NCBI RefSeq assembly: GCF_964204865.1
Contig: NC_135261.1
Location: forward strand, 7,502,001 to 7,566,000
Reading direction: 5' to 3'
Length of the DNA: 64,000 nucleotides
Source: Styela clava
Taxonomy: Eukaryota
Positions within the stretch are counted from its first letter, which is position 1; every line of letters begins with the position of its first letter. Shown one piece after another: positions 22,160 to 55,100 of this stretch. The notes under the pieces were generated by a model. The model saw only the letters and a list, made by a program, of their open reading frames with translations, was not told the DNA's origin and did no database searches. Made by a program: the position numbers and the translations under genes.

Positions 22160-24931
22160 TTACAATAAACCATGACACATTCCATCAATGTATTCCAATC
22201 TCATGCACATGTGACCATACCATGTTTGAGGATAAACTCGAATGTATCGGCATATTATTACATTCGGAAACATGTTGGTGACCTTGGTTCTTCTATCATT
22301 ATTTCCAGTAAATATCTAAAATATATAATAAGGATCAAAAGTATCACAATAAGTTCAGTAGATCATATCAAAATATAGTAAATATAAGTGATAGTTGGAT
22401 TACAGTTGAGTATATATTAATCTAAATTAGGGGATTGCAACATTTTCTGTCGTTGGGCCCTATAACCAACTTCAGACATCTAGCTGGGCTACACAAAAAA
22501 TAGTTTTTTCATGTAAATACCGAATAAAAAAATTCTTGTTCAGCCTTACAGCTATAAAGGCAACAGGCAAACGGCCGAAGATTTAACGCAGCGACAAGAA
22601 TCATGTGAGCGCTTTTTTAAACATAAATGTCGGATTAGGATTTTATTCTTGATGAAAAAAATCTTGAGTGTTGACAAAGGCTCTGATATAAGTAAGAAAT
22701 AGCCACTATGAAGTGTAGAACTCCCCGCTTGTCAACAAATTTCTCTGATAAGAGTTTTTCATGCATTTTGCTGTCTCCTTGCCAAGTTAACTGGTATCTA
22801 ATTTAATTAATGAGTATAGTTTTATAATAAGTCACTATTTCTTTTATATATATATGTTTTTTATTTGAATTCCATATGAAAGACCCCAAATTCGCTGCTG
22901 ACTAGCTTGTTAACAATGACTAGAAAATCCCATATTATGATAAAACTGTTGAAAATCATTATTATTTGCAAATCGAGCTTGATTACTAAATACATCCTAA
23001 ATGCAGTTTTATAAAGGCAAAAAGAGTTTCGAGATACTATCTTACCTTGTCTGAACCATTCTCTTGTATTGTTATCATTGCGCTGGTAGAATTTCCATAC
23101 GATATTTTGAAAGACCGAACCCAATTATCGTTGCGTGCTCGTCCCTGTGTCACGATTCCTCCTATTGGTTTTGGCGCCTTGAAATATACCTGATGCCATT
23201 CTCCTATTGCACCTATAAAAATGAATCATTTATTTTAATATTCTACGAAGAGATCATCCCACTTACATTTTTTAATGCACACAGTCTAAATTCTATAATT
23301 TTGCAACAGGCAGAAGAACTTACTAGAAATCAAAGTTAAATCAAATAGTAACCACATTGCACTATAAGTGCAGAAAGATTTACCAGAAATAACTACTATA
23401 CGATTCATTGCATTCTGTGTTATATGATAGATATTTTTGACCGTGATAATGAACTCTTTCAATTTCATAATTGAGTGCGAAATAATTTAAAGTTTGTTTT
23501 GAAGTTTTATTGAGAACTTATGTACTTGTCAAATATGATATAATTTAACAAACATTCAAATAAATTTGTATAAATAAAAAATTTGGATAAAGACATAGTT
23601 TCCGCAAACGCGAAAATAGTATATTTTGAAGCGCAAACTGTCAGTGATTTTCCATGATTATTTATTTTAATTGTAGAAAATCAAAATAACTTACTTCTAC
23701 CAGGAATCCAAACAGCGTACTTTCCGCCAGAACGATCCACATTGTCCAATCTTCCATAATAAGCTTGATAACTGGGACCATCAAATGATGAAGCTGTGAT
23801 TTGTGAGTCAGGAATGATATAACGATTCTTGACACCCATGTAGCAAATCTCAGCTGAAATTAGAAGTGACCACGCTGTGTATGGTAGGCAATTTCATATC
23901 TTGATTGTTTTTAGTTGGGAGCATTGTAGGGAGACAGAACTTCGGAAACAAATGTGGGAACATGCGATTGAAACCATAATTATTTTATAAGTTTTTGATA
24001 ATATTTTTTCGTCGAGGTTAGATATATTAACAGACTATCGTATTTATTATGAGCAACCATAATTAATTCAGTGACATGAAGTAAAGTCTCTCAACCTTAT
24101 AATAAAAGTTGCCATTGTCATATGATTGCCGCTCAAAACGACTCAGTTTGCCTATTTCTCTAAAATGCTTTATTTATGCAATATTTATATTTATTTATTC
24201 ATGCAATATTTATGTCTGATATAAAAACAGTTATTGGCACAGAGTGTGCCGTACACAGATATTACTCTTGTTTAATTTCAATGATTTTGACATTAATCTG
24301 TTTTATTTTCAAGCAAATGATTGAAGCCGGAAAAGGTGGAAATATACAAATGCAATTCAAATCAAGATCTTCGGCATATGTTTGACAGCAGTGAAATGCT
24401 TACAATTTAGCATATTCTTCATGAACTTTTGACTCTTCAGGAATGAATCTGAAATGAATAAATTAGATGATTAACAAATTGTTAAAATATTTTGAAATTT
24501 AGAGTTTTAATAACAGTTCTGTCTTGAACAATACAAGAGTCGTGTTCAGTTTGAGGTGAATTTCTTTGCACGTTAAATCAAAAAATATTATATTGAGAAT
24601 AAATGATTTGTAATAAATTGAAATTTATCAATCTAATGGAAAAATCTTTCCGATATGATTCGTTCAAACAATCACCTTCCAATTTCCTCATTCTTTCTTC
24701 TAGGTGTTCCGCTGTTCCTGGTTCACCCCGTTCTCCTTTTATTCCGGGTAATCCACGTATTCCTTCATTTCCTCTTTTTCCTGGCCTTCCCTGGCACTGA
24801 CTCGAGTCACATCTGGCGAGACTCGCATTGCCGTTTGCCACCACGTGTGAACAAAATTCATACAATGTTGGCATGTGACATAAGACACAAGGAAGCAGCA
24901 ATATAGAACAGCAAACAACAAAAGAATTCAT
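22160..24931 (-). CDS. Secreted collagen + FA58C/discoidin-domain protein, copy 1 (260 aa)
   Basis: Exons 24931-24676 (signal peptide, 3 Cys, 9 Gly-X-Y), 24448-24404 (neck), 23853-23695 (ICYMG...IPDSQITASS...GRLD...W), 23212-23046 (EWHQV...GIVTQGR...WVRSFKISY), 22315-22160 (IFTGNNDR...CRYIRVYPQTW...MRLEY..GMC). 783 nt, in frame, all GT-AG. Confidence 0.92.
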
Positions 24932-27094: not shown

Positions 27095-27748
27095 TGTCAT
27101 TTATTAACAACTCGAACAGTGAACGATCCAAAACAACCAAACACTCCAAAGGAACGGAAAGCATAAAATAAAAATAACAGATACCAGGCAGTAAAATACA
27201 AGAAAGACCACATACACAATAAAAAACACTGACCAACCCTGAAATCGAAGACACTTTCAATAGAAACTAAATGACCCCCAGAATCCAGTACAATAAACTA
27301 GCTACTGCAATTTACAAAACAGGCCGAGACATTTAAAAAGACTATAAACAGTTCTATAGGTGCACAACATTTGAACAATACTGATGAAAGCTAATTCCAC
27401 GACAAAACTGGAAACACAACACCAAATGAACTGTAATTGCACTGTACTGATAAAAACAATAACACGGTCCCTACGTCAGCACACTGTCCAGCACTAAACA
27501 TCCAACGGTCACACAACCACAGACAAACATCCCCGAAGACCAGAGGCACCCACACAGACACAAAACACCCACCAATTCAACCGAAACACTCAGACGACTG
27601 GCCCTCGTCAACCCACGGTGCAGACCACGCCGCAAAAAGGGAAGGCTGACAGTGTCACAGCGCCACCAAGTGTCCTCGCAGATAGAATACCAAATATGGA
27701 AACGATATCACATGACGTCATTTAACAGGCAAAACAAGGGTCGTCACA
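27095..27748 (-). mobile_element. Possible solo LTR
   Basis: TG...CA termini (TGTGACGACC...AATAAATGACA on -) and strong strand compositional skew, but no clean TSD. Confidence 0.35.
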
Positions 27749-31087: not shown

Positions 31088-31129
31088 GACTGTAGCCGAT
31101 ATACGTCTGCGTAAACGTTAACTGCTCAA

Positions 31130-34100
31130 TATTCGATTTTATGTCAGTCTCTTAACAAGATAAATATGCGCTGCTTTCGTTGGCGAGCGATATCAGCAAT
31201 CATATCCATCTTAACCAGTGGCATACCACTAACACTCATTAACCTCTGAGCACTAGGAAAATTATAAAATTTAGAAAAATTCATTCATAAGACTGTATTT
31301 GATTTTTAACCTTGTAAATAGATAATATTTGCGACAAGAATTATGACCCAATTAGAAAAATAAATGATTGCTGATTTTAAAAATGTTTAGACCGGTTAAA
31401 TTCTTTCAAAATTGAACAGCGAGGTATAAATGAATAACATTTTGAATGTCGGGACCTCTAGGCTTCATCCCACCTTGCCTAATGGGAAATCCGGCACTGC
31501 TGTACGCCCTATGTCAAATCGCAAAACAGTTATATTGTATGGGCGCGTTACCTCGACAATAATTTATCGTTGTCACGGGGCCGTGTTCCCTAGCGGTCGT
31601 TATCTGTGGATTGTCAACTGCACGCCTGTTCACAAAATATAAATCAAGAATATTGTCGACGTGCGCTATATCGAACGATAGTTGACTATTGCCTTGTTCT
31701 GAGCTGGTTGACGAAATAAAATATTCTGTAATTAATTCACCAGATGGCGAATACGTTTTTTTTACTGGAAGGTATGTCGTCAGCGACTTTATCATGAGTT
31801 TGAGAGTTAACTAGCCATTTGAGACATAAATTATTCAAAGTTGAGATGGGACTACAACTAAGTCTATATTTTGTGATGTAATAATACGATTGGCATTTGA
31901 CCATTTGCTAACTTAATTTCGTACGCTTTTCTAGCAAATAATACAAAGTTAACAAAGCAACCTGACCCCAGACCCAACGTTATAGAACGAACAACAGATA
32001 CAGAACATATTATATTGTGAAGCGACAAAGATAACTAGTAGCTGATATAGAATGACAGTCGAGCAAAAATTCATGGAACACAAAAAACATTACTATGGCA
32101 ATCATGTAGAATAGATATATACACGGTCATAAATGAATAAATGACAGAACTATTGTGACGACAATTATCCGCGTTTAAAAGCAGATTTTAAACGTTAAGT
32201 TGATTTATGATTCGTGATTTACTAATTACATAATTTTTGTTCACATAATATGATAAAGCAAAGATCTTCTGAAATATAAAAGGATTTTCACTAGATGGAA
32301 TAAAGTCCTACATAAAGGTCGACTGTTCCATTTGACTAACTATTCTAAGCAATTTAATAGTTTTTATACCAAAGTTTAATTTTATCTTATGAATTTATAC
32401 GTATAGTTCAGTGCGCAAAACAAAAATAAATTTTATGACCATCTGAACAGATGTTTGAAAATCTTCTGAACAATTACCAATCGATCAACATTTACCAAAT
32501 ATATGCCATACAAGCAGAAACTCTCCCTTTTCAACACAATTGCAGACTAGATATTTTGAAGCATTCAAAAACCAAAAACAACACGAATTTACAGAATAAA
32601 AATGTTTCTTTTTTGTTCTGTAGAAAAAAATCCTAAATATCTAATCCAATGACGTACAAGATTGTTAGCGCCATCTGCTGTGTTAAATTCCCAGTAGGGT
32701 TGAAATAATAAAAGATATCAATGGATTAAATTGAAACAAGTATTTCAGTTGAAGTTCGGGGTCATTTTCTCACGACCTTTAATATTTATATGTAAATCCT
32801 CCAGGTGAATTGCGTTTAAAATAAAACTAGTGGAAAAATTCCGTCGATGATAAATACTTTGACGCAAATCAACGAGGCTATAAATAAATCCGTAAACTTT
32901 TGTTACAAATCCATCCATTAAACTGCAAAAGAAATTATATGCATATTAACTAGCATTTGAATCATTTATTTTCTATTGCATTTAATATGGCATCAATTAT
33001 TTTTTCTGATCTGAAAACCCTGTTTTTACATTTGAAAACTTAGATTTCCAGCCAATCGCAGAATTCAAAACGGTTCAAATTAAAGGTGTTTTTCCGACTA
33101 TGACGAGCAATCATTACAAAATTGTTTATTTCACTTAGCACAGCTAGAGGACAATACTTAGCTAGTGTCTGTATTCTGATATGGCCAATTATTCTACTGG
33201 GAGGTCTGTTTTAATAAACACATCATCGAGAAGGTCCGTGTAACCGCACAATATTTAATTTAAACCAATCTCTTTAACAAGATAAAGATGCTCTGCTTTG
33301 GTAAGCAATTTCAGCAATAAAATCCATCTTAACCCGTGGCATCGTTAAAACTCATTAACCTACGAGCACTAGGCTAAATTTTCGAATATAAAAAAATTCA
33401 TTCGTTCGATTGTATTTAATTTTTAACCTTCTAAGTAAAAATCATTTGCGACAATACAGACCTAATATACAGAGCATATTGTAATGTGAAACAACAAAGA
33501 TAACTAGTAGCTGACAGAGAATGACAATCGAGCAAAAATTCATGGAACACAAAAACATAATCATGGCAATAATGTGGAATAGGAATAATATAAGTATATA
33601 CATAGCCAAAAATGAATAAATGGCAGAACTGTTGTGACGACAATTATCCGGGTTTATAGGCAAATTTTTTACCATTAAGTTGATATATGATTCGTGATTT
33701 ACTAATTAGATAAATTGTGTTCACATGATATGATAAAGCAAAGATCTTCTGAAATATTAAAGGATTTTCACACGATGAAATAATGTTTTACATAAAGGTC
33801 GACCGTTTCATTTGACTAACTGTTCTAAGCAAGATCAATTTAATACATTTTATATCAAAGTTTCAATTTAATCTTATGAATTTATTCAAATAGTTCAGTG
33901 AGTAAAAATAGATAAATTTCACGAAACAAAGTGTCCGAATACACTTATCCGAACAGATGTTTGAAAAATTTCTGAACTATTTTTCCTTTTGAAAGAGGAC
34001 GATGCTCAAATATATTAACACGAAAATCAAAGTAAAGCAGAACAGTTGATGAAAATAGATTGTTTTATCTACGCGCCCTATGGATAAGTAGAATTTGAAA

Positions 34101-34319: not shown

Positions 34320-37141
34320 TTACAATAAACCATGACACATTTCATCAATGTATTCCACTCTCATGCTCATGTAATTATGCCATGTTTGAGGATAAACTCG
34401 AATGTATCGACATATTATTACATGCGGAAACATGTTGGTGACCTTGGTGTTTCTGTCATTATTTCCAGTGAATACCTGAAATATATAATAAAGATCAAAA
34501 ATATCACAATAACCTCAGTAGGAACTAACAAAATATAGTAAATAGTGAATATAAGTGATAGTTCGATTACAGTTGAGTATATATTAAACTAACACAGGGG
34601 TTTGCAACATTTTTGTCGTTGGGCCATATAACCAACTTCAGACATCTAGCTGGGCTACACAAAATATAGTTTTTTCATGTAAATAACGAATTAAAAAATT
34701 CTTGTTCAGCCTTACAGTTATAAAGACAACAGGCAAACGGCCGAAGATTCACGCAGCGACAAGGGCCATGTGAGCGCTTTTTTAAACATAAACTGTCGGA
34801 TTAGGATTTTATGCTTGATGAAAAAAATCTTGAGTGTTGACAAGGGCCACACTAAATCGCGTTCCTGGTTGTGGCCCGCAGCCCGCCTGTTGCACATCCC
34901 TGATCTAAATATTAAATAGCCACTATGTAGTGTAGAATTCCCCGCCTGTCAACAAATTTCTCTGATAAGAGTTTTTCATGCATTTTGCTGTCTTCTTGCC
35001 AAGTTAACTGGTATCTAATTTAATTAATGAGTATAATTTTATAATAAGTCACTATTTCTTTTCTATAGATGTTTTTTATTTGAATTTTATATGAAAAACA
35101 GCAATTTCTCTGCTGGAAAGCTCGTTAACAATGACTAGAAAATTCCATATTATGATAAAACTGTTAAAATCATTTTCATTTGCAAATCTAGCTTGATTAC
35201 TAAATACATCCTAAATGCTGTTTTATTAAGGCAAAAACAGTTTCAAGATACTATCTTACCTTGTCTGAACCATTCTCTTGTATTGTTATCATTGCGCTGG
35301 TAGAATTCCCGTACGATATTTTGAAAGACCGAACCCATTGATCGTAGTCTGGTCGTCCCTGTGTCACGATTCCTTCTATTTGTTTTGGCGCCTTGAAATC
35401 TACCTGATGCCATTCTCCTATCGCATCTATGAAAATGAATCATTTATTTTAATATTCTACGAAGAGGTCATCCCCACTCACATTTTCCAATGCACCCAGT
35501 CTAAATTCTATAATTTTGCAACAGGCAGAAGAACTAACTAGAAATCAAAGTTAAATCAAATAGCAACCACATTGCACCACATATAAGTATACGTTTGATT
35601 GCATTCTGTGTTATATGATAGATATTTTTTACCGTGATTATGAACTCTTTCGAGTTCATAATTAGTTGTGAATTAATTTAAAGTTTTTTTTGAAGTTTTA
35701 TTGAGAATTTATGTACTTGTCAAATATGATATAATTTAACAAACATTCAAATAAATTTGTATAAGTTAAGAATTTGGATAAAGACATAGTTTCCACAAAC
35801 GCGAGAAAAAAGTATATTTTGCAGCGCTAATTGTCAGTGATTTTCAATGATCATTTATGATAATTGTAGAAAATCAAAATAACTTACTTCTAACAGAAGC
35901 CCATACAGCCCACTTTCCCCCAGAACGATCCACATTGTCCAATCTCCCATAATAAGCTTGATAACTGGAACTAGAAATTGATGAAGCTGTGATTTGTGAG
36001 TCAGGAATGATATGACGATTCTTTACACCCATGTAGCAAATCTCAGCTGAAATTAGAAGTGACCACGCTGTGTATGGTAGATAATTTCATTTCTTGATTG
36101 TTTTTAGTTGGAAGCATTGTAGGGAGGAAGAACTTATGTGCGGAAACAAATGTGGGAACATGCGATTGAAACCATAATTATTGTAAATGTTTTTGATTAT
36201 ATTTTTTCGGCGAGGTTAGATATAATAACAGACTATCGTATTTATTATGAGCAACCATAATTAATTCAGTGACATAAAGTAAAGTCTCTTAACCTTATAA
36301 TAAAAGTTGCCATTGTCATATATGATTGCCGCTCAAAACGACTCAGTTTGCCTATTTCTCTAAAATGCTTCATTTATGCAATATTTATAAATATTTATTT
36401 ATGCAATATTTATGTCTGATATAAAAACAGTTATTGGCACAGAGTGTGCCGTACACAGATATTACTCTTGTTTAATTTCAATGATTTTGACATTAATCTG
36501 TTTTATTTTCAAGCAAATAATTGAAGTTGGAAAAGTTGGAAATATACAAATGTAATTAAAATTAAGAACTTCGGCATATGTTTGACAGCAGTAAAATGCT
36601 TACGATTTAGCATCTTCTTCATGAACTTTTGACCCTTCAGGAATGAATCTTAAATGAATAAAGTAGATGAATAACAAATTGTTAAAATATTTTGAAATTT
36701 AGAGTTTTAATAACAGTTCTGTCTCGTAAAATTCAAAATTCGAGTTCAGATCGAGTTATAATTCTTCGCACACTAAATTAAAAAATAACATATTGAAAAT
36801 AAATGATTCGTAATAAATTGAAATTAATTGAAAATTATTTATCTGATGGAAAAATCTTTCCGATATGATTCATTCAAACAATCACCTTCCAACTTATTTA
36901 TTCTTTCTTCTAAGTGTTCCGCTGTTCCGGGTTCACCCCGTTCTCCTTTTATTCCCGGTAATCCACGTATTCCTCCATTTCCTCTTTTTCCTGGCCTTCC
37001 TTGGCACTGACTCGAGTCACATCTGGCGAGACTCGCATTGCCGTTTGCCACCACGTGTGAACAAAAGTCATACAATGTTGGCATATGACAAAGAACACAG
37101 GGAATCAGCAATACAAAACAACAAACAACAAGTAATTTCAT
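34320..37141 (-). CDS. Secreted collagen + FA58C/discoidin-domain protein, copy 2 (260 aa)
   Basis: Exons 37141-36886, 36648-36604, 36046-35888, 35426-35260, 34475-34320; same exon sizes as copy 1 (256/45/159/167/156), open frame. Confidence 0.92.
34595..34902. mobile_element. hAT MITE in intron 4 of collagen-discoidin copy 2
   Basis: caggggtttgcaaca ... tgttgcacatccctg followed by atctaaat; partial paralogous copies at ~22428-22680 and ~40290-40550. Confidence 0.75.
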
Positions 37142-40052: not shown

Positions 40053-42414
40053 TTACAATAAACCATGACACATTCCATCAATGTATTCCACTCTCATTAT
40101 CATGTGATTATTCCATGTCTGAGGATAAACTCGAATGTATCGACATATTATTACATGCGGAAACATGTTGGTGACCTTGGTGGTTCTGTCGTTATTTCCA
40201 TTAAATACCTGAAATATAAATAGGGATCAAAAGTACAACAATAAGTTCAGTAAACCATATCAGAGTATAGTAAATACATTGTAATTGTCGTTGGGCCATA
40301 TAACCGACTTCAGACATCTAGCTGTGCTACACAGCAAATTAAAAAATTCTTCCTCAGCCTTACAGTTATAAAGGCAGCAGGCAAAACAGAAGAAGATTTT
40401 ACGTAGCGAAAGAGCCATGCGAGCGCATTTTTATACATAAACTGTCGGATTAGATTTTTATGCTTGATTGAAGAAAATCTAAGTGTTGGCAGCGGCCACA
40501 CTGAAGAGCGGGCCTGGTTGTGGCCGACGGACGCCTGTTGCACACACCTGATCTAAATCATAAATCGCCAATATAAAAAAAATGTAGAATTCCACGCTTG
40601 ATAACGAATTTCTCCGATGTGAAATTTTCATTCGTTTCGCTTTCTCTTTGCCATCTTAACTGGTGTCTACTTCAATAAGAGTATTTATTAAGTATAATAG
40701 TATAAAAGATTAAATTTTAGATGAAAGACCGCAACCTTGATTGAAGCAACCTTGATGACCCGGAAATCCCATATTGTGATAAGAGTGTTGAAAATCATTT
40801 TATAATAGCAAAATGGGTTTAGAAATACTACCTTACCTTGTTTATTAAGTATAATAGTATAAAAGATTAAATTTTAGATGAAAGACCGCAACCTTGATTG
40901 AAGCAACCTTGATGACCCGGAAATCCCATATTGTGATAAGAGTGTTGAAAATCATTTTATAATAGCAAAATGGGTTTAGAAATACCACCTTACCTTGTCT
41001 GAACCATTCTCTCGTATTGTGATCATTTCGCTGGTCGAATTTCCATACGATATTTTGAAAGACCGAACCCAATTATTGGCATCTGGGCTTCCCTGTGTCA
41101 CGACTCCTCCTATTGGTTTGAGCGTCTTGAAATCTACCTGATGCCATTCTCCTATTGTATCTATAAATATCAAATATTTTATTATTCTACGAAGAGGTCA
41201 TCCCCACTCACATTTTTTAATGCAGTCAGTCTAAATTCTAGTATTTTGCAACAGGCAGAAAAACTAACAGAAATCAAAGTTGAATCAAATACTACCACAT
41301 TGTACTATAAGTGCAGAAACGATTTACGAGGAATAACTACTATACGTTTTATTGCATTCTGTGTAATATGATAGTCTTACTCTTGGCAATGATAATGAAC
41401 TCTTCCGAGTTCATAATTGGGTGTGAAATAATTCAGAGCTTGTTTTAAAGCTTTTAAAAAATAACTTCATAATAACTCAAATATGCCATAATTTACCAAA
41501 CATTTACAAAAATTAGTATAAGTTGAGAATTCGGATAAAGACACAGTGTTCACAAACGTGAAAAGAGCATACTTTTCAGCAAAGAATGTCAGTGATTTTT
41601 AATGATTATTCTTATATTAATTATAGAAAATCAAAATAACTTACCTCTTCTAGATAACCATACAGCATACTTTCCCCCAGAACGATCCACATTGTCCAAT
41701 CTCCCATAATAAGCTTGATATTGGTTATTGTAAATTGATGAAGCTGTGATTTGTGAGTCAGGAATGATATGGCGATTCTTTACACCCATGTAGCAAATCT
41801 CAGCTGAAATTTATATCAGAATTATAAGCTGGTATATATGTTTTATAATGTGACATTTCATTTCTTGATTGTTTCATTTGTATTAGCAGGAAACACTGAA
41901 GTATTCCGAGGAACATTACTTAAACCGGGAATATGAAAATACAATTCCACGTAATGATTCTGCATATGTTAACAGTAGCAGAATACTTACGATTTTTGAT
42001 TGCCAAAAGCTGCTTTTGAGTCATCAGGAAAGAATCTTGAAAGAAAAAAAAAGGATGTTGAAATATTTAGGAATATGTACTATGTATAACATGTATTAAT
42101 TGAAAGGTAATTAACCGATTACAATACATGCTCAGACTTATTTGGTTCAACTCATCACCTTCCAACTTCTTTATCCTTTCTTCTAGATGTTCCGCCGTTC
42201 CAGGTTCGCCCTGTTCTCCTTTTATTCCGGGTAGTCCACGTATTCCTTCATTTCCTCTTTTTCCTGGCCTTCCCTGGCACTGACTCGAGTCACATCTGGC
42301 GAGACTCGAATTGCCGTTTGCCACCACGTGTGAACAAAATTCATACAACGCTGGCATGTGACATAGCACACAGGGAAAGAGCAAAATCAAGGTAACAGCA
42401 ACGGAAAATTTCAT
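40053..42414 (-). CDS. Secreted collagen + FA58C/discoidin-domain protein, copy 3 (260 aa)
   Basis: Exons 42414-42159, 42035-41991, 41803-41645, 41160-40994, 40208-40053; same exon sizes, open frame. Confidence 0.92.
40684..40999. repeat. 157-bp near-perfect tandem duplication including the exon-4 donor of copy 3
   Basis: tttattaagtataatag...ccttaccttg occurs at 40684 and again at 40841. Confidence 0.95.
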
Positions 42415-42828
42415 ATTAGATTTTCGGATAATATTTCCTGAAATATATCAGCAGATTTGAATTAAAAAAAAACATATAAAAAGTTTTCAAAATCTTATAA
42501 ATTTTCATCTTTTTACAATATAGAGCTAAGTAGGGATTTTAAAATCATAATTTGCTTCACATATAAATTTTAATTATTCTATATTTCATTTAGTCGTATA
42601 GGATTTTTCAACACCTCAAAATTTGAAGATACGCTATTTACTACTTATATGTGTTCTCAGGTGGAATATTGCCGTACATTGGCGTAGCTAGGGGGAGTTT
42701 GCGTGTCGGACCCACATCGAAGTTTCCACATCTTCACCATTTACAAGGTTCTGAATATTAGGCTGATACACAAAAATTTTCTATTTTTGCATTGATTGTA
42801 ATTTTACAGATTTAGGTTTGTTTATATA

Positions 42829-45800
42829 ATATATGGCGGATAAATGAAGACATAGTTAATCGTTTAAATCATACAATTTCGCTTTTAGTGTTGGTAGGAA
42901 CTCGTCTGCACTAGACGCCATGGAACCTGACTACTCACTACAATCACTTTTTTTTGTACTTAGCTGCAATTTATCGAATTCGTATCAACACAAAGCGAAA
43001 TTATTGTCTGTTACGAAAGACAAATAGGGTTGTTGAAAGAAGCGTAAAATTCTATGAATTAATTTAAGACAGGGCAAAATTGAGCCTCAGTCAAGCTTGC
43101 GTTTTCCAGTATTTCCTTTCACATGTATTTAATGTGTGCTGGCCTTGCTTTTTCCGTGCAGAATTATATAGCGACAAACTTGACCCAATGCTGTAAGAAC
43201 GTAGATGATATATATCGGCGATAAACGTTGCTACAAAATAGATACACAACACAAGATCGGTCACGCGAAAACCATACATCATAATAATAAATACAAAATG
43301 AAATCATGCAGAATTGAAATATTTGTTCATCTGACAAATAAATCATGAATTAGCAAAACGATAGCGATAGCGAAACGAAAGCGATACCTTTTTCAACGAT
43401 AATTACATGTAAAAGCTGATTTTGTATTGTTAGATGACGTATGAACGTAGTTATCAATTTCCAAGAAACTAATTAAGTAATTATTTCTCGGGAAAATAAT
43501 ATGATTGATTGAAGACGAAAAAATGCCAATGAGACATCGTGCATAGACGATTCGACTGTTTTCAATAAATATTTTTTCAATCAGCAAGATCACGAGTGAA
43601 TTAATTATAACTCGAAAATACTCATTCGTGAACAAGTTCATGGAATTGCAAATTCTTAAAAGTAGCTTAAAAGGAAAACAACAAGCAATTGATTCATAGA
43701 AAATATTGCTTAAACGCATTTTGAAGAAATGTTTAAAATGTCCTCATACCAATACCAATTTAATTACCGACAAGTTTTTCAAACAATACTAGGGTGCTTA
43801 AAAACATTGGTCAATTTGTGATAACCATACCGATTCGTATTTGATTCCACAGTGACTGGTATTGAATATATAAAATGTTTGTAATATATGAGACTGTTAA
43901 TATTAATCTGTTGTTTAATGTTTGTAAGAATTCTTCTGCCTCTTCGTTGGCTGAGTCCCTCATTTTTGGAAATTTGGGATAACAGCTTTTCTTTGTGAAT
44001 TGTATGAACTTATTCAGGAACATTTTAGTCTTATTTTGAAAGTGACAATGAAATTTCTGTTAAAATACGGTACACTCCGATCTCAAGAAATTGGGGCAAT
44101 AACTGTTAAAATTGAATTAGAATGTCATCTTTAAGATAAATTTGAGAGTCCGAGGTTTTTCATGGCACTTGATTCTCCACTACAATCAACACGGCAATGC
44201 CAAGTGCGTGCGTTACTTAATACACTTATAAAGATGGGTCAACTGTAGTTGTAACTGAATATTTTTAGAATATACAATGCAAAGTTACGATTAGGTGGGT
44301 GGTATATTGTTGTGTTCAAATTTTATTTATCTTTTATTATTTATTATGAGTAATTTAGCAGGCTATTGAATCAATTATAAAACAAAGTTAATTCATTATC
44401 AAAACACTTTTTAAAATGAAAAACAAAAGACGTATATGATGCTTCTTATTCCTGCATTGTAGAGGTCCTCAGTTGAAGGCCAATTTTTTTGCGCTTGCGC
44501 TTATCCGAAGTCTCACTCACGTAACTGTTTCTTGACTTGACTAATCATGAATGGCTCATTGTCAACTGCTTTCTACTCAACATCCATGCAGCAAAGATAA
44601 ATCTTAGCACGGCCCATACAACGCCAGTAATCGCTCTCAATTGCTCAATCAGTTGACTTGACTTTTATTATTAAGATAAGATACCTATAGTAGCTGACAT
44701 AGAAATAATGACAATAATTTACAATATAAATATATGCATGGCTTATCAATCATGATTTAATGATGAAACCATGGTGACTCTTCCAGCGATATTCACGTTT
44801 GAAATCAGATTACCGTAAGTTGGCTTATAAACTCTGATACTTACATTTTGTCGAGAAAATAATATGAAAAACGACCTAATATATGGCGGATAAATGACGA
44901 CATAGTTAATCGTTTAAATCATACAATTTCGCTTTTAGCATACGTACGAACTCGTCTACACTAGACGCCATGGAACCTGACTACTCACTATAATCACTTT
45001 TTTTTGACTTAGCTACAATTTATCGGATTCGTATCAACACAAAAAGAAGTTATTGTCTGTTTCGAAAGACAAATAGGGTTTTTGAAAGAAGCGTAAAATT
45101 CTATGAATTAATTTGAGACAGGGCAAAAATGAGTCTCAGTCAAGCTTGCGTTTGCCAGTATTTCCTTTCACATGTATTTAATGTGTGCTGGACTTGCTTT
45201 TTCCGTGCAGAATTATATAGCGACAAACTTGACCCAATGCTGTAAGAACGTAGATGATATATATCGGCGATAAACGTTGCTACAAAATAAATACACAACA
45301 CAAGATCGGTCACGCAAAAACCATCCATCATAATAATGAATACAAAATGAAATCATGCAGAATTGAAATATTTGTTCATCTGACAAATAAATCATAAATT
45401 AGCAAAACCTAGCGATATCTTTTTCAAAGATAATAACATGTAAAAGCTGATTTTGTATTGTTAGATGACGTATGAACGTAGTTATCAATTTCCAAGATAC
45501 TAGGTAAGTATTTATTCCTCGGGAAAATAATATGATTGATTGAAGACAAGAAAATGCCAATGAGACATCGTGCATAGACGATTCGACTGTTTTCAATAAA
45601 TATTTTTTCAATCAGCAAGATCACGCGTGAATTAATTATAACTCGAAAATACTCGTTCGTGAACAAGTTCATGGAATTGCAAATTCTTGAAAGTAGCTTA
45701 AAAGTAAAACAACAAGCAATTGATTTATAAAAAATAGTGCTTAAACGCATTCCGAAGAAATGTTTAAAATGTCCTCCAACCAATACCAATTTTATTACCG

Positions 45801-48712
45801 ACAAGTTATTCAAACAATACTAGGGTGCTTAAAAACATTGGTCAATTTCTGATAACCATACCGATTCGTATTTGATCCCACAATGACTGGTATTGAATAT
45901 ATAAAATGTTTAATATATATGAGACTGTTAATATTTATCTGTTTGTTAATTTTTGTAAACATTAATGCAACTTCTGCCTCTTCGTTGGCTGAGTCCCTCA
46001 TTTTTGGAAATTTGTAATAACAACTTTTCTTTGTGAATTGTATGAGCTTATTCTGGAAAATTGTAGTCTCATTTTGGAAGTGACAATAAAATTTGGGCTA
46101 AAATACGGCACACTCTAATCTCAAGAACATGGGGCAATAACTGTTAAAATTGAATTAGAATGTCATGTTTAAAATAAATTTGAGAATCCGAGGTCTTTCA
46201 TGGCACGTGATTCCCCACTACAATCAACAAACCAATGCCAAGTGCGTGCGTTACTTAATAACACTTATAAAGATGGGTTAACTGTAATTATGAATATTTT
46301 TAGAATTCACAATGCAAAGTCACGATTAGGTGGGTAGGTGGTACTGGGCCATAGAATATTGTTGTGTTAAAATTATTTTTTACCTTTTTTTTGGCACGAC
46401 GTTTTAGTTATTTAGCATTAGGCTATTGAATAAATTATAAAACAAAGTTTATTCATTTTCAAAACACTTGTCGTTAAAATGAAGTATTTAATGCTTTTTA
46501 TTCATGCATTATAGAGGTCCTCAGTTGAAGGCAAATTTTTTTGCGCTTGCGCTTATCCGAAGTCTCATTCACGTAACTGTTTCTTGACTTGACTAATCAT
46601 GAATGGCTCATTGTCAACTGCTTTCTACTCAACATCCATGCAGCAAAGATAAATCTTAACACAGCCCATACAACGCCAGTAATCTCTCTCAAATGCTCAA
46701 TCAGGTGACTTGATTTTTTATTATTAAGATAAGATACCTAGCAGCTGACATAGAAATAATGTCAATAATTTACAATATAAATATATGCATGGCTTATCAA
46801 TCATGATTTAATGATGAAACCATGGTGACTCTTCCAGCGATATTCACGTTTGATATCAGATTACCGTAAGTTGGCTTATAAACCCTGATACTTACATTTT
46901 GTCGAGAGAATAATAAAAAAACAACCTAATATATGGCGGATAAATGACGACATAGTTAATCGTTTAAATCATACAATTTCGCTTTTAGTGTACGTACGAA
47001 CTCGTCTACACTAGACGCCATGGAACCTGACTACTCACTACAATCACTTTTTTGACTTAGCTGCAATTTATCGGATTCGTATCAACACAAAAAGAAGTTA
47101 TTGTCTGTTTCGTAAGACAAATAGGGTTGTTGAAAGAATCGTAAATTTCTATGAATTAATTTGAGACAGGGCAAAATTGAGTCTCAGTCAAGCTTGCGTT
47201 TGCCAGTATTTCCTTTCACATGTATTTAATGTGTGCTGGCCTTGCTTTTTCCATGCAGAATTATAAAACGACAAACTTGACCCAATGCTGTAAGAACGTA
47301 GATGATATATATCGGCGATAAACGTTGCTACAAAATAAATACACAACACAAGATCGGTCATGCAAAAACCATCCATCATAATAATGAATACAAAATGAAA
47401 TCATGCAGAATTGAAATATTTGTTCATCTGACAAATAAATCATGAATTAGCAAAAGCTAGCGATACCTTTTTCAAAGATAATAACATGTAAAAGCTGATT
47501 TTGTATTGTTAGATGACGTATGAACAAAGTTATCAATTTCCAAGATACTAGGTAAGTATTTATTCCTCGGGAAAATAATATGATTGATTGAAGACAAGAA
47601 AATGCCAATGAGACATCGTGCATAGACGTTTCGACTGTTTTCAATAAATATTTTTTCAATCAGCAAGGTCACGCGTGAATTAATTATAACTCGAAAATAC
47701 TCGTTCGTGAACAAGTTCATGGAATTGCAAATTCTTAAAAGTAGCTTAAAAGGAAAATAACAAGCAATTGATTTATAGAAAATAGTACTTAAACGCATTC
47801 TGAACGAATGTATGAAATGTTCTCAAACCAATACCAATTTAATTACCAACAAGTTTTTCAAACAATACTAGGGTGCTTAAAAACATTGGCCAACATTTGA
47901 TAATCATACCGATTCGTAATTGATCCCACAATGACTGGTATGGAATATATAAAATGTTTAATATATATGAGTCTGTTAATATTAATCTGTTGTTAATTTT
48001 TGTAAAAATTAATGCAACTTCTGCCTCTTCGTTGGCTGGGTCCCTCATTTTTAGAAATTTGTAATAACAACTTTTCTTTGTGAATTGTATGAGCTTATTC
48101 AGGAAAATTATAGTCTTATTTTGAAAGTGACAATAAAATTTGGGCTAAAATACGGCACACTCTAATCTCAAGAAAATGGAGCAATAACTGTTAAAATTGA
48201 ATTAGAATGTCATGTTTAAAATAAATTTGAGAATCCGAGTTTTAGTAATTTAGCATTAGGCTATTGAATAAATTATAAAACAAAGTTGATTCATTTTCAA
48301 AACACTTATCGTTAAAATGAAGTATCTGATGCTTCTTATTCGTGCATTATAGAGGGCCTCAGTTGATGACAAAATGTTTTTGCGCTTCCGCTTATTGGAA
48401 GTCTGATCCGCGTAGCTGTTTCTTGCAGCAGGGATAAGTCTTAACACAGCCCATACAACGCCAGTAATCGCTCTCAAATACTCAATCAGGTGACTTGATT
48501 TTTATTATTAGGTTAGGAAACCTAGCAGCTGACATAGGAATAATGACAATACTTTATAATATGAATATATGCATGCCTTATCAATCATGATTTAATGATT
48601 AAACCATGGTGACTCTTCCATCGATATTCACGTTTGAAATCAGATTACCGTAAATTGGCTTATGAACCCTGATACTTACATTTTGTCGAAAAACAAAATA
48701 TAAAAGAAACAA
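42829..48712. repeat. Tandem triplication, unit ~2.05 kb
   Basis: Units start atatatggcggataaatga near 42829, 44879 and 46929; equivalent ORFs are offset by 2049 and 2048 bp; the third unit carries deletions. Confidence 0.95.
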
Positions 48713-49148
48713 CCATTTCAAGCAATACTTGATATTGTTTTAAAAGAAGCAATGATATACGTAAGATTAGACTATTTCGTTTGATATTTATTTTGAGCAA
48801 GTTTATGTGAATAAAATTTATACCTTCATCTACTAAACTTGTATGTAGTTTAATAAATAAGCAGAACAAAAATGTTAACTCCATTTTTTAGATATTTCTA
48901 GACTACCCTAAATATTGACGAGGTATTTGTTTTTTCATAAAACTCTTATCTGTCAATCATGTGGATAAATTTAGATAATCAACATTGTTCGACAACCACT
49001 CATAGGTATCGACATATTATTAAATGCGAAAACATGTTAGTGACCTTCGTGTTTGTGTCAATATTTCCTGTAAATATCTTAAATTAAGAAATGATTCAAA
49101 ATATTAAAGTTAGATCAATATTTAATTACATACGGGTATATTTTTTTT

Positions 49149-49156
<8 letters not shown>

Positions 49157-49181
<25 letters not shown>
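49157..49181. repeat. (TA)n microsatellite
   Basis: About 12 TA units. Confidence 0.9.
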
Positions 49182-49773
49182 CAACTGTGGAATGTGGGAA
49201 CACTCACTTGTCAACGAAGTTTTCATAATAAAAATTTTCTGAGAAGTTTATTGAGAAATCTGCAGAATTCGCTATCAATAACTTCATATATTTTAAATAC
49301 ATGTTAACATGCATCTACTTAAATATCTGAACAGAAAATGGAAATGATATGTATGTTCTTTGGCGTTAGGGGTCGCTGTAGAGTTGTGACTGTTCTAGAG
49401 GTATCTTTTCAATTTCGGACAAAGGCTTTGAAATATCAGAAATATATTATCAATTTATAACAATGGGGCCCAAATATACTAAATTCACGCTTGTGTTCTT
49501 GTTGGATTAAAAGCGGGTAAATTATATTTGATTAATTCAAAAATAAGTTTTGATACTACAGTACCTTGTCTGAACCATTATCACGTGTTGTTATCATTGT
49601 TTAAAAACTTGTCTTACTTGTGTCACGATTCCTCATTTTGGTTTAGATGTCTTGGAATCTATTTCATGTCATTCTCCTACTTTATCTATCAAAATTCTTT
49701 ATTCATTTCAAAGAGTTTTCAATTTTATACTCCGACTAACATTTAAGAAGCTCCTGCACTGTATACTATAGAT

Positions 49774-50069
49774 CAGGAGTGGGTAAAGTTTTTTGAACCA
49801 GGGGCCAAAATGTTGCCCACCTAGCCCGGCGGGCCATGTAAGTGTGACGTAAAGAGTTACATTTCATAAACAATATTCACAGTATTACAAAGCAAAGCTG
49901 GAAAACAATAAACCTCGTGCCAAAACTAAATTTAACCGCAATCTCAACAAATACCTTGAGCTATTTTTAGCCAATTGGTTTCAGTTTGGCAGTGGCAGCA
50001 TCAGGCGGACCAGATTGAAATATCCAACGGGCCGGATTTGGCCCGTGGGCCGTACTTTGACTATGTCTA
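49774..50069. mobile_element. hAT MITE in copy-4 intron 3
   Basis: Perfect 8-bp TSD ctatagat; degenerate TIRs; ggccggatttggcccgtgggcc subterminal motif. Confidence 0.7.
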
Positions 50070-51128
50070 CTATAGATGAACGTTCTTTCGTAACATGCAG
50101 ATGAATTAGAAAGATTGAATCAAGGACCATAATGCATCAAAAGTTTAGTAGCTTCAAACACATCTGACCATTAATATCGCCAAATCCCGACACATTTCGA
50201 GTACACGTTTCAAACATTTCTTTGTATTTTGGCTGAAGTCAGCTAAATTGGACTTCTCTAACAAGTAACAAACAATTGAAATAGTTTCCAAATACTAACT
50301 TCTGTAATTGTAAATTTGAATGAATTCTAAAGTTATTCAAATATACAACTCCAAATTTAGAGGATTTGTATTGAAACCGGATGTTTCCATATCTATTTTG
50401 AATATATTCCTTTTTTTGGCCATCATCCCTGTTGCAAATTAAATTTAAATATAATCTCAGCACGTCAGCAAATGCTCGTCCTAGAATGCAGATAACAGAT
50501 CTGGAGCGATAAAGTTTATTACAAAACGAAAAATGCAACACGCAGCTGGAATAGAATCATTATTGAGCTAAAAAACCATTCAATACAATAATAATTACAA
50601 TGAACAATCATATACCATATACCAAGCCTGTTGAGTTATAGGGAATAGAAATAAAGATGCTACAACTTGTACCAGTTGGTTCCCCAGCTTTTTATTCCAA
50701 ATTTGGAGGGTGGTAGATATTTTGTTATTGGCGATAAAACTATTTACAACTGATAAAAATGTGTTATGTATTTGGCTGATAATTTTTACCGGCATATGTG
50801 CCACTTTTTGAATATTCAAATACAATTTTATTTACGTTAAGAATTAAAGTATTGTGTCAGACCCAAAAATGAGAGGGGGTGTTTGAAAGTTTAGGGGGTG
50901 TTCACCCCCTATAGGAGGGGAGGGGTTGAAGGGAAATCACTGACTTGTACAACGATATTTATGTTTGAAAGAAGATTATAACAGCAAATACACATTATCA
51001 CAATTTAAGCACGTGTATATCGTAACAATTCAATTATACCGGTATCTTAACGTACGTACCGGTATGAGGATTGCGTACGACAGTCTTTTAGGTATCACGT
51101 ATCAGCCCTATATTAAGGAAGCTTGAAG

Positions 51129-52100
51129 ATGTCACAAAAACGAAAACTAGACACTGAAAACAGGCGTTTTTCGGATAAATGGCAACGTTCTTATTTCTTT
51201 ATTGAAAAGAATCAAACTTCAGCAATTTATATTCTTTGCCAACAAGCTATTCTTGTTCTATTCCTGTTATAAACTACGGTCCAGACTGACAGATAATCAC
51301 TTAGAGTGCGGTATTGCAAATACAATGTAACAAATTGGAGCCACGTTTTGAACATCAGTTTTCAAGCAAACCCCAATTACAAGTATCTACAAAAATGCAA
51401 GTGAACTATGTTGGCTATTCGTTTTTTTTTAATATTCATATACATTGAGACGTTTTTTTGTTTAACAAAAAAAAAACATGAGTCGCTATCTGGGGTCATC
51501 TCTTATCTCTGGGGTCAATCTCAACCTCTGTGTCAGTGGATAATATTGGTAGTACAACTGCAAAAACCATACTCACCAGAGATAACAGTGTTTTATAAAC
51601 TTCAACTACAAATTTAATTAGATAACAAACCTTGGGTGTCGCTGCCTGATAAACAGTTCCCAGCGATTTCCCTTCCCAGTAAAATGTGTGTCAATTTTAC
51701 TTTTTTCATAATTTCGTTTGTTATTTTTACTGGATGGAAAAAATAAACTTGACCATGATATGAGTAGACATTTATACAAAGCCGTACTCCAGATGAGCAA
51801 GTAACTTCATTAGTCGCTATCAGTTACAAATCCTTTTTGAAAGTCGTGCTTGTTATTCCTCGGGTATTCTATCACCCAACTATTATACTTTTGAATTTTA
51901 TTACAAACAAACTGCGATACTGGGTGTATCTAAAATGAATCTTGCAGCCTATTTTGGTGCCTATTTTTCAAAAATTTTTCAGGGAACGCCCTGAACCCCA
52001 GCCTTTACGTCGGGTTTTTTTGGTCATCTCGCTTTACTGGCCCGCGAGTATCCTCACCTTGAAATTTTGGCCCGCGGCCAAATAAGTTTGGGAACCCCTG
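51129..52100 (+). mobile_element. Decayed hAT (SPIN/GTF2IRD2-like) transposon remnant
   Basis: MSQKRKLDTENRRFSDKWQRSYFFIEK...ILCQQAI resembles the N-terminal zinc-finger region of this transposase group; right TIR gtttgggaacccctg followed by atctagat. Confidence 0.6.
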
Positions 52101-55100
52101 ATCTAGATTGTGACGCATCGTGTCGTCTGACTTTTTTCCAGTGCTTCTGTTTGGCTTCAATATACGCCAGCATAGCCGCCAAATCCTATATTTTGAACTT
52201 TTTTTTCATAGGATTTTGTATGTGGACGGCCGCATTTTTTTCGCGACGGCCACATGCGGCCGTACGCCGCAGGTTGTGCACCGTTGCTCTAGATCTTAAA
52301 AATGTATATTGTTATTCAAGTTACTATCATATTTTGGTTTCCCTTAATATTACCCTTAACTTGTTGTGAAGATTCTAAAAATAACATCTGTACTTTAAAT
52401 GTGTACTGTATCTGTACATCTGTAAATTTTAAGATGTTCAAATAAAATTGCATAATTGAGAAATTGGAAAAACATCTTCACATTTGTAAAATTTTCATGC
52501 AAACAAATATCGGTCAATTGGAACGATTATTGAATAATAATTATGTAAAATCAAAATCACTTACTTATCTGTGTAGCCCAGTATGGATACCTTCCCCGAT
52601 CTAGATTGTCCAATCGTCCATAATAAGCATGATGATTGTTATAGAAAACTGATGAGGCTGTGATTTGTGAGTCAGCAATGATGTGACGATTCTTTACACC
52701 CATGTAGCAAATCTCGGCTGGAATTTATATCAGAATTATGAGGAAATAGTAAATATTGTATATTATGACGTTTCATTTCATGATTGTCTCATTTGTATTA
52801 GCTGGGAACAATGAGCACTGTAGGTGTTTCGAGTTAATTAAACCGGGAATATGAAAATACAATTCAACGTAATAACATATATCAACAGTGGTAGAATACT
52901 TACGATTTGTCATCGCCATGAGTCTTTTATTCATCAAGAAAGAATCTTGAAAGAAAAAAAAACAAGAACGTTGAAATATTCAAAAATATGTACTATGTAT
53001 AACATGTATCAATTGAACCGTAATTAACCAATTACATTACATTTTCGGAATTATTCGTTTCAAATCATCACCTTCCAACTTCTTTATTCTTTCTTCTAGA
53101 TGTTCTGGTGTTCCAGGTTCTCCTCTTACCCCGGGTAATCCACGTTCTCCTTTATTTCCTTTTTTTCCTGGCCTTCTTTGGCACTGACTCGAGTCACATC
53201 TGGCGAGACTCGCGTTGACGTTTGCCACCACGTGTGAAAAAAAATCATACAATGTCGGCATATGACATAAGTCACATAACACACAGGGAAAAAGCAAAAT
53301 CAAGGTGACCACAACGATAAATTTCATATTAGATTTTCGGATAATATTTCCTAAAATATATTAGCAGAATTGGATTAAAATGGTACAAATGGTAAGTTCT
53401 TCAAAAAATTATATAAATTTATCATTTTACACTTTGAAGCTAAGAAGAGATTTTGAAAGCATAATTTGCTTTACATATGAAGCATGCGTTTCAGATAAAT
53501 CAGCTCTATTATTTCATTGGTGTTGGCGTAATTAGCTAGCGTAATATTCCCAATTAAATGTAGGGGTGAGTGAAGTTGACTATGTTGCTAACCTACATAT
53601 ATGTTAATTTTATGTTTTCCAATTTTCAGGTTTGGTGATATATTGTTATCTTCAAAACATTCACCCAAAGTATGTTTTGAAGGAATATAATATGATTAAT
53701 AGCGTTTAGAACTAGGTAACTCTTTCTTAGTTATTACGTGTAAACTTTTCTGTAAAATATCTAAATATTTAACAAAAAAATTACGGTAGAATTATTGAAA
53801 CCAATAAATTAGAATAGTGGTATTTGTAGAAAATAAACATCGCTATGTATAAGGGGTAAATATTTTTAGAGGATTAGGCGAGGAAATTTAAAGAAGCCTC
53901 TACCACACGCTCACATCATAAATTATAACTGTAAACATTAGAAATCATCACTAAATCAGGGCGGAATAACCTGTGCGGTGGTGTGTTTCGGTTGCACTAT
54001 ATAGCAAAATTCAAAAATATTCTAGACGTAATTAGTAATTAATTACCTATAATTAGATAATTGCTTGGCGTGCTTCTCTGTGTTAATACATATATAATAT
54101 GACACCTCCATTTCATCTATCAGTGATTCCAAAAGTGGGCAACATATCTCTCTGGAGGTCAAAGGGAGATACATTATGGGGCAAAAAACGACAGGCGATA
54201 GCACATTCAATTTTCGCTTATAGGTTGTACCTATAACCAAATTGTCTCCTAATATTAAGAAAACTTCTTGACAATCAACAAGCTGCCCACCCCATTAGAG
54301 GAGAAGACACCATAAACACATTAGAACACTTGTTTAATTGATTTGTAATGATCTTGTTTTTAATTTACTTTAATTTTTGAATTGCCGGGTGCCATAATAA
54401 CGTATAAAGTGCTGTAAATGCGCAATGGTACATAAATACAAGAGAATAATAAGCGAATTTATGTTTGAGATAAAAACAATTCCTTACCATCTTAGGCACA
54501 AGTATATGAGATATAGAAATCCAATTTTCTAGCGAAAAACGACCCAGAAAAATACTTTGATTTCAGTCGCATCGTACAGCTTATACCAAAACGTACAGGG
54601 TTAGAGTGTGGAAAAAGTTTCTGCATCCCTGCTCTGAATAATGACAATTTCTGCTAATGTACAACTCACGCTTCATTGATTTGCTCGGCGCCAAGGAGAC
54701 TTGAGGCCGAGCTGGCTGAGGTACGAAGAACCTCAGTGAAAAGCACCCTATCTGCAAAACTAACAACCGAAGAACTATTACTCTCAAATTGTATCAGCGG
54801 AATTGAAATAAAAATATACAAATGGTGAGTTTTTCAAAATTTCATATGAATTGATCCTTTTACGACATAGAGCTGAGTAGGGTTTTTAAAGTCATAATTT
54901 GCTTCACATATGAAACATGAGTTCCAGTTTAATCAGCTCTATTTAGTTTAGTAGTAGTATTTTAGAAGATACGTATTTACTATAGTACTTGTAATACTTT
55001 ACTTATACTTGTTTTTGCAGATGTTATTATGTCGTATGAAAATCTACCCTTTTTATACCTTACCGTCTGAAAATTAGACATCTGAATCAAAAGCATGACG

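Follow-up and report, generated by a model that had tools for sequence, protein, structure and literature searches.

Why do neighboring copies of one gene encode proteins that are nearly identical over most of their length and radically different in four short segments? The question is raised by a window of 64,000 nucleotides from the tunicate Styela clava (C16:7502001-7566000, on a chromosome-scale contig), which is AT-rich (~34% GC) and free of N runs. Its minus strand carries three intact genes (c1, c2 and c3), a pseudogene (c4) and the last exon of a further copy (c5), all of which were located by tblastn with exon peptides. The encoded protein comprises a signal peptide, a Cys-rich N-terminus, eight collagen GXY repeats, a coiled-coil neck and one F5/8-type-C (discoidin) domain. 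The five exons are named exon 1, the neck exon (45 nt) and the discoidin exons 2, 3 and 4. The variable segments are loops of the discoidin domain, and the answer that is considered probable here is that the genes belong to a birth-and-death lectin family, the loops of which diversify by fast substitution together with the exchange of loop-sized patches.

Four variable loops in a constant framework

A genome-wide search with exon 2 found 12 close members of the family: c0 to c5, d1, d2, x10, x14, y1 and y2. Copies c0 to c5 lie within 73 kb, d1 and d2 are found 300 kb away on the opposite strand, and the others are on other chromosomes. Eleven of the 12 are intact, although the neck exon of c5 contains a stop codon. 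As each of the 11 has its own loop set, the germline repertoire proposed in the initial annotation of this DNA has a counterpart in the genome.

Variability was measured in nine close paralogs, over 29 loop codons and 132 framework codons. The mean pairwise amino-acid identity is 36% in the loops versus 87% in the framework. Columns with four to seven different residues fall into four blocks: after ITASS (L1), around the conserved W up to the exon 2/3 junction (L2), after TQG (L3) and after QTW (L4). The contrast between a near-invariant framework and four divergent segments, first noticed in the initial annotation, is thus borne out in nine copies, and every peptide string quoted there was recovered in its place on the minus strand. 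One correction is needed, as a few framework positions vary too, namely the residue after VDF and one in NNDRx. In the nucleotide alignment, framework codons are near-invariant even at third positions, and loop codons often differ at two or three positions. Loop length is kept, with no indels and no stop codons among the nine copies, and the same four peaks are seen in a second subfamily on C13. The loops of c1 are given below with the sites picked out by the codon models, P being the posterior probability that omega, the ratio of nonsynonymous to synonymous substitution rates (dN/dS), exceeds 1.

23768-23785, minus strand: loop L1 (FDGPSY), matched to spike 1 and neuropilin loop L1; site P127, P(omega>1)=0.85-1.0
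23695-23722, minus strand: loop L2 (KYAVWIPGR, then S/A at 23208-23212 in the next exon), matched to spike 2; site G152, P=1.0
23124-23141, minus strand: loop L3 (RARNDN), matched to spike 3; sites R178 and N181
22205-22219, minus strand: loop L4 (YGHMC), matched to the factor VIII W2313-H2315 segment; sites Y242, G243 and C246 in the exon-4 fit

HMMER alignment to neuropilin-1 b1 places L1 to L3 on the segments that hold Y297/W301, T316/D320 and S346-Y353, which are the three loops forming the ligand site of that domain (PMC8945599). Among known structures, the closest are factor VIII C2 entries that have the spike residues L2251/L2252 and W2313-H2315 in their titles. Where the alignment runs to its end without gaps (query 252 = residue 2324), W241 corresponds to W2313, and L4 is accordingly assigned to the W2313-H2315 segment. 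Residue by residue, L1 to L3 presumably correspond to spikes 1 to 3 of factor VIII. In an AlphaFold2 (AF2) model, all four variable blocks are non-strand segments between strands. The earlier proposal that the variable segments are the spike loops of the discoidin fold is therefore upheld by the neuropilin b1 and factor VIII C2 alignments.

In composition, the loops have few L, F and M residues and an excess of Y, A, N, H and W, which would argue against an insertion into membranes like that of factor VIII. By analogy with the domains above, the loops would form the ligand-binding surface. Two copies have additional cysteines in a loop: L4 of c1 (YGHMC) holds one extra Cys, and in exon 3 of x10 (L035:4675-4841) L3 reads CPICDE, with two extra Cys between which a within-loop disulfide could form.

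Substitution, probable exchange and possible selection at the loops

Intron trees pair c1 with c2 and c3 with c0 (bootstrap 100), and every intron pairs them in this way. Between c1 and c2, introns differ at 153 of 1960 positions (7.8%) and loop replacement sites at 23 of 67.5 (34%; Fisher test against introns, p=1.8e-9), confirming the earlier claim that these codons outpace the neighboring non-coding DNA. Silent sites of this pair differ by 9.7% in the framework and by 12% in the loops (2/16.5). Its omega is 3.4, and a contrast in the manner of McDonald and Kreitman between the replacement-to-silent ratios of loops and framework gives p=0.0075.

The youngest pair, c3 and c0, shares a block of at least 5 kb at ~97% identity, including 2.2 kb upstream, in which exon 1 is identical and introns differ at 40 of 1398 positions (2.9%). 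Here, 25% of loop replacement sites differ (p=1e-10 against introns), and so do 6.7 of 14.8 silent loop sites (45%; p=1.5e-7 against introns). Codon by codon, two of the differences are purely silent, and at least three further silent steps are obligatory. It cannot have been produced by point mutation and selection since the introns became alike. In both pairs one copy accounts for most of the change, with relative-rate counts of 15 vs 6 (c1/c2) and 17 vs 5 (c3/c0), while the sister keeps the parental loops.

It could be argued that the loops simply drift under relaxed constraint (omega ~1), with no adaptive diversification, and that the framework and the introns of the young pairs have been homogenized by conversion or recent duplication, which the mismatch-dense loops escape. 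Recombination is indeed detected, as described below, and the framework dS of 0.29 between c1 and c5 is lower than the intron divergence of distant pairs (0.5-1.0). In the codon models, omega of the loop block is 0.7-0.8 and not different from 1, and the synonymous rate is raised 1.8-3.3x. Nevertheless, drift cannot yield loop replacement divergence 4-5x that of the introns between c1 and c2 with silent loop sites at the intron level. Furthermore, in c3/c0 four patches of 15-33 nt must each have been spared by a conversion or duplication that covered at least 5 kb. The constant loop length without indels or stops, the skew in composition towards Y, A, N, H and W, and the confinement of seven high-omega sites to the loops also speak against relaxed constraint, which is accordingly judged unlikely.

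Codon models were fitted with our own implementation of GY94 F3x4. The one-ratio model M0 gives an omega of 0.32. In likelihood-ratio tests (LRT), M2a is preferred over M1a (LRT 29.3, p=4e-7), with an omega of 4.6 for 3.2% of sites, and M8 over M7 (LRT 33.8). When exon-specific trees were used for the three discoidin exons, p was 0.0225, 0.017 and 0.044. Site models assign an omega of 4-7 to seven sites with posterior >0.5 (P127, G152, R178, N181, Y242, G243 and C246), all of which are loop residues, and the framework omega is 0.22.

Several results weigh against the favored reading. Taken as a block, the loops have an omega of 0.80 on the gene tree and 0.72 on their own tree, neither of which differs from 1, and their synonymous rate is 1.8x that of the gene. 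Giving loop codons their own rate multiplier (r=3.3) improves the log-likelihood by 35 units and reduces the M2a signal to an LRT of 0. In addition, recombination is known to inflate site-model tests. A second DNA sample has ~15 intron variants at c1 and none in L1 to L3, which is weak evidence as contigs drop rare variants. Finally, genome searches with exons 2, 3 and 4 recovered no donor exon or pseudogene cassette for the c1 and c3 loops in this assembly.

Since the M2a signal vanishes once the loops are given their own rate, a dN/dS above 1 is not robustly established. The diversifying selection that had been proposed for these loops thus keeps part of its support, in that omega exceeds 1 under M2a and M8 and does so at loop codons only, and loses the remainder to the block omega of 0.7-0.8 and to the loop rate; the dN/dS test by which it was to be judged is equivocal. 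What holds over all copies together is that the loops evolve far faster than their surroundings, at silent as much as at replacement sites. A caution follows for similar families, where site models may report positive selection for what is a mixture of fast substitution and patch exchange.

A raised rate at both classes of site is what would be expected of a local mutation process acting on the loop patches, such as clustered, multi-nucleotide or directed hypermutation. The fit with a loop multiplier of 3.3 and omega<=1 is far superior to that of a uniform rate with omega>1. The silent loop divergence of c3/c0 (6.7/14.8, set against 2.9% in introns), the many loop codons with two or three changed positions and the c1 and c3 loops without a donor in the assembly agree with it. 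However, silent loop sites are not raised in c1/c2 (2/16.5), and identical loops in non-sister copies are better explained by exchange or retention than by new mutations. It is plausible that donors exist outside the sample, as the older RefSeq protein P0122 has yet another loop combination, and we know of no loop-targeted mutation mechanism in tunicates. A local mutation process is therefore regarded as very unlikely.

Further insight into the origin of the loops came from trees and site patterns, which reveal a mosaic history. The framework tree has short branches that radiate like a star. Tips of the loop tree are long for c1, c3, d2, c5, x10 and x14 and almost absent for c2 and c0. By nearest neighbor, L1 of c2 goes with d1 and L1 of c0 with d2 (p=0.06), L2 links d1, d2 and c0, and L3 of c2 again goes with d1, so that two loops of c2 are closest to a copy 300 kb distant. 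Three-way site patterns in L1 and L2 contain runs of six to eight consecutive sites at which c0 equals d2 against c3, flanked by sites at which c0 equals c3. The pairwise homoplasy index (PHI) test detects recombination over the whole gene (0/2000 permutations, p<0.0005) and within the discoidin exons (p=0.009-0.015). No other copy in the genome has the loops of c1 or those of c3; as this assembly holds no donor, patch exchange is for these two copies something that we infer.

Loop variants do exist outside this assembly. P0122, from the d2 locus in the older RefSeq, is 89% identical to the current d2 (P0142, L034) and shares its one-codon deletion, and the differences are concentrated in the neck exon and the loops, so that both its neck and its combination of loops are distinct. 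The protein represents either a divergent allele or a variant in copy number. Active, patch-wise diversification of the loops, through cassette-like micro-conversion from a pool of paralogs or alleles or through targeted mutation, would make the family a natural "discobody" repertoire; this stronger version is thought rather improbable.

The mosaic pattern might also be produced by the assembly, if c0 and c3, and perhaps c1 and c2, were alleles placed in tandem and their loops old lineages under balancing selection. Old balanced alleles with recombining flanks would be expected to have deep silent divergence in the loops and nowhere else. The block common to c0 and c3 measures at least 5 kb at 97% identity, and a further 1 kb of c0 flank matches sequence beside c2, also at 97%. 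Against this, c1 and c2 sit between c0 and c3. Moreover, the c0/c3 similarity stops after ~5 kb, the flanks have unequal numbers of repeats and are set apart by an indel of 181 nt, and NCBI has separate genes on one chromosome-scale contig. An artefact of this kind is highly improbable. Allelic hypervariability at c1 was considered separately and rejected: the second DNA sample gives no sign of it, and exon-4 variants in RNA-like contigs look like cross-laid transcripts of paralogs.

The favored reading is thus a tandem birth-and-death family in which new duplicates would acquire new loop sets and the sister copy would retain the parental ones, c2 resembling d1 and c0 resembling d2. In c1, new loops would have arisen by rapid amino-acid replacement after the duplication that separates it from c2. 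In c3, they would have come from patches of deeper origin, set in surroundings that match c0 at 97%. Replacement or exchange of patches between paralogs would explain the c0-d2 likeness at L1 and L2 and that of c2 and d1 at L1 and L3. Purifying selection, probably with exon-limited gene conversion, would hold the framework uniform, and selection for distinct loop sets would prevent the loops from being homogenized. Such selection against homogenized loops would be the most economical cause of four distinct patches within sequence that is 92-97% identical.

Gene copies, genomic setting and predicted protein

Each unit in the window has its own ATG, hydrophobic leader (signal peptide) and stop codon. 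The units are therefore separate genes, and a single multi-domain gene holding all of the discoidin domains is ruled out. The copies are as follows.

22160-24931, minus strand: gene c1, 260 aa (= P0120), defined by splice sites, translation, identity to P0120 and spliced contigs
24676-24931, minus strand: c1 exon 1, with signal peptide, Cys-rich N-terminus, 8 GXY repeats and the start of the neck
24404-24448, minus strand: c1 neck exon
23695-23853, 23046-23212 and 22160-22315, minus strand: c1 discoidin exons, the last including the stop codon
34320-37141, minus strand: gene c2, 260 aa (= P0118), exons 36886-37141, 36604-36648, 35888-36046, 35260-35426 and 34320-34475
35961-35978 (L1), 35888-35915 with 35422-35426 (L2), 35338-35355 (L3) and 34365-34379 (L4), minus strand: c2 loops
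40053-42414, minus strand: gene c3, 260 aa, exons 42159-42414, 41991-42035, 41645-41803, 40994-41160 and 40053-40208
41718-41735 (L1), 41645-41672 with 41156-41160 (L2), 41072-41089 (L3) and 40098-40112 (L4), minus strand: c3 loops
48940-53327, minus strand: pseudogene c4, open in exon 1 (53073-53327), the neck exon (~52904-52945) and exon 2 (52560-52724)
49565-49680 and 48940-49071, minus strand: c4 remnants of exons 3 and 4 with stop codons, found by tblastn
63940-64000, minus strand: end of the last exon of c5 (KSYMS loop), the remainder of which lies beyond the window (locus L032)

Copy 4, listed beside copies 1 to 3 in the initial annotation, is a pseudogene, as its exon 3 and exon 4 remnants are interrupted by stop codons. 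An initial four-exon gene model was also abandoned when public proteins named "lactadherin-like [Styela clava]" exposed the neck exon, which sits inside the former "intron 1" and was located in 10 of 11 copies. Intron phases are 1, 1, 1 and 0, and the splice sites are conserved. The proteins predicted from the final exon models of c1, c2, d1 and y2 are identical to the public proteins P0120, P0118, P0119 and P0001. Spliced contigs of the RNA-like run X5 match all of the c1 introns tested (joins 24676|24448, 24404|23853 and 23043|22312), and c1 is thus transcribed and spliced as modeled. NCBI likewise annotates the copies as separate "lactadherin-like" genes on one chromosome-scale contig.

The surroundings of the genes have features of their own. 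Within intron 3 of c1, at 22391-22680, the depth of contigs is 20- to 500-fold higher in each of the four runs, loose ends and odd joints are numerous, and the segment is probably a high-copy interspersed repeat. In c5, the neck exon within intron 1 (L032:3655-5851) contains a TGA and the intron has grown to 2.2 kb; the gene may skip this exon, which would preserve the frame, or be decaying. Upstream of c3, positions 42415-48243 contain three tandem repeat units of ~2.1 kb with related open reading frames (43393-43719, 45424-45813 and 47472-47798). At least one such unit is present at c0, 97% identical to the first unit upstream of c3. Downstream of c2, positions 31279-32305 are 97% identical to the downstream flank of c0 (L031:1-1021). 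Because of this flank identity, the c0 region looks like the c2-c3 region without c2, which would be the trace of a larger segmental duplication or deletion. Finally, an open reading frame at 8223-8579 on the minus strand encodes the C-terminal half of a fibrinogen-related domain (Pfam Fibrinogen_C, E=5e-31), so that a lectin-type gene adjoins the array.

Beyond the 12 close members, searches with exons 3 and 4 found at least 60 more distant discoidin exons, clustered on many chromosomes, and neither extra close copies nor orphan exons. In one family member on another chromosome, P0008, the collagen stalk and discoidin head are followed by an ILEI domain (PF15711). A search of 1.8 billion representatives with exon 1, the N-terminal and collagen part, returned relatives with the full layout only from Styela clava and from two short contigs, which does not imply absence elsewhere. 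Within the literature library that was searched, no account was found of a lectin combining collagen with discoidin, nor of hypervariability in discoidin loops.

At the protein level, exon 1 encodes the leader, the Cys-containing N-terminus, the eight GXY repeats and the start of a helix, which is extended by the neck exon, and the last three exons encode the F5/8 type C domain. In the first model of c1, Pfam placed Collagen on exon 1 and PF00754 on exons 3 and 4, with single-exon scores of 29.4 and 30.9 bits (cut-off 28.2); full-length relatives score 67-86 bits. The AF2 model of P0120 has a neck helix at residues 74-99 and a discoidin domain at residues 110-256 with a predicted local distance difference test (pLDDT) score >90. 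The top Foldseek matches are factor VIII C2, lactadherin C2 and neuropilin b1 (E=3e-15, target-normalized template-modeling score 0.80-0.86, root-mean-square deviation 1.5-2.5 A). Both the model and these matches have the beta-sandwich fold with the loops at one end. The domain opens with C104 and closes with C256; both cysteines are kept in all 19 family members compared and may form a disulfide.

Molecular modeling was used to ask how the subunits could associate. In the proposed mechanism, the N-terminal cysteines, the short collagen stalk and the coiled-coil neck would give a trimer carrying discoidin heads. A homotrimer model of three copies of residues 44-260 has an ipSAE of 0.34 versus 0.02 for the best control, with at least 91% of contacts agreeing between runs and a partner pLDDT >=83. 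Its contacts involve the GXY region (46-72) and the heptad positions 74, 77-78, 81, 84-85, 88, 91-92 and 95. The ipSAE mark is passed by 21 of 30 solved homo-pairs and by none of 23 single chains, and was calibrated on two copies rather than three. This calibration and a stalk of only eight collagen repeats count against the assignment; with them taken into account, the model suggests that the protein probably trimerizes through its collagen stalk and neck.

Function and comparison with known systems

As the loops differ and the framework is constant, the family would provide a set of heads with different binding surfaces. By analogy, the most likely role of such heads would be the multivalent recognition of non-self or other extracellular ligands. 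The proteins could instead serve in gamete recognition, self-sterility or the assembly of tunic or adhesive matrix, with sexual conflict or another arms race driving the loops. The discoidin domains of mammalian lactadherin (SED1) mediate the binding of sperm to egg, and rapid evolution is seen in oyster bindin, a lectin of similar fold. Set against such roles, the order of N-terminal cysteines, collagen, neck and C-terminal head is that of soluble defense collagens, and the window also carries the fibrinogen-domain lectin gene. In addition, a Styela clava "lactadherin" is an agglutinating glycoprotein according to the citation of Guo, Dou and Dong 2019 (PMID 31140104) in PMC10980280. That protein shares the species and the NCBI name ("lactadherin-like") with the genes described here. 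On balance, a non-immune role is considered decidedly unlikely, and recognition of non-self or other extracellular ligands by multivalent lectins the better account.

If this is correct, germline-encoded diversity of recognition would have a new scaffold in the discoidin domain. Tunicates, the sister group of vertebrates, have no antibodies, which raises the question of how their recognition gains its breadth. Should patch-wise diversification also be true, the domain would be the third scaffold, after immunoglobulin and leucine-rich repeats, for combinatorial loop-based recognition in chordates. The genes are short and expressed and can easily be made; as the c1/c2 and c3/c0 pairs differ almost solely in the loops, they are suited to a comparison of specificity.

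As far as its sequence tells, the layout is that of a collectin or ficolin with a discoidin head. Like mannan-binding lectin, surfactant protein D and the ficolins, the Styela protein has a signal peptide, N-terminal cysteines, a GXY stalk, a coiled-coil neck and a C-terminal head, and trimer formation through stalk and neck is predicted here. The head is PF00754 discoidin, unlike the C-type lectin or fibrinogen-like domain of those proteins, and the stalk has 8 repeats only. Both share a Pro-Gly-Lys-X-Gly stretch in the stalk. In the Styela proteins this reads RPGKRG followed by N, I, T or M and thus, compared by sequence, lacks the final Pro of the vertebrate protease-docking motif (Hyp-Gly-Lys-X-Gly-Pro), to which the mannan-binding-lectin-associated serine proteases (MASP) bind; d1 has PGIRG, with Ile for Lys.

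The C2 domains of factors VIII and V and of lactadherin, as well as neuropilin b1, have the same fold and Pfam family, and the variable loops coincide with their membrane- or peptide-binding spikes and loops. In contrast, those proteins come from single-copy vertebrate genes with conserved loops, and the spike tips of factor VIII and lactadherin are hydrophobic, those of lactadherin serving for phosphatidylserine membranes. The Styela loops are polar or aromatic and specific to each paralog, and the discoidin domain stands on a collagen stalk rather than after EGF, A or CUB domains. Lactadherin (MFG-E8) itself has one or more EGF domains and two tandem discoidin domains. The Styela protein, with one discoidin domain, no EGF domain and a collagen stalk, is not a lactadherin, and mammalian lactadherins cover just 55% of the query. 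Lacking EGF domains and having one discoidin domain only, it is poorly served by the NCBI name.

Among invertebrates, diversified recognition families include the FREPs of snails, the VCBPs of amphioxus and Ciona, the C1q-domain proteins of bivalves and the F-lectin bindin of oysters. These are likewise tandem, secreted multigene families with variability on the binding face, to which recombination and gene conversion contribute. The Styela family differs in its discoidin fold, and no evidence of somatic diversification or alternative splicing was seen here. The peptide-binding region of the major histocompatibility complex (MHC) offers another parallel, with short binding-site segments, deep mosaic lineages and raised silent divergence in homogenized surroundings. 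MHC diversity is mainly allelic, whereas that of Styela lies between paralogs, with no allelic excess in the one gene examined (c1). A likeness in design is found in the "Discobody" (PDB 4pt6, by its title), a factor VIII C2 domain with randomized loops, in which variation resembling that of complementarity-determining regions is carried on a fixed framework and yields new specificities. The Discobody is a laboratory construct; the Styela family would be a natural, germline-encoded counterpart of such engineered discoidin binders.

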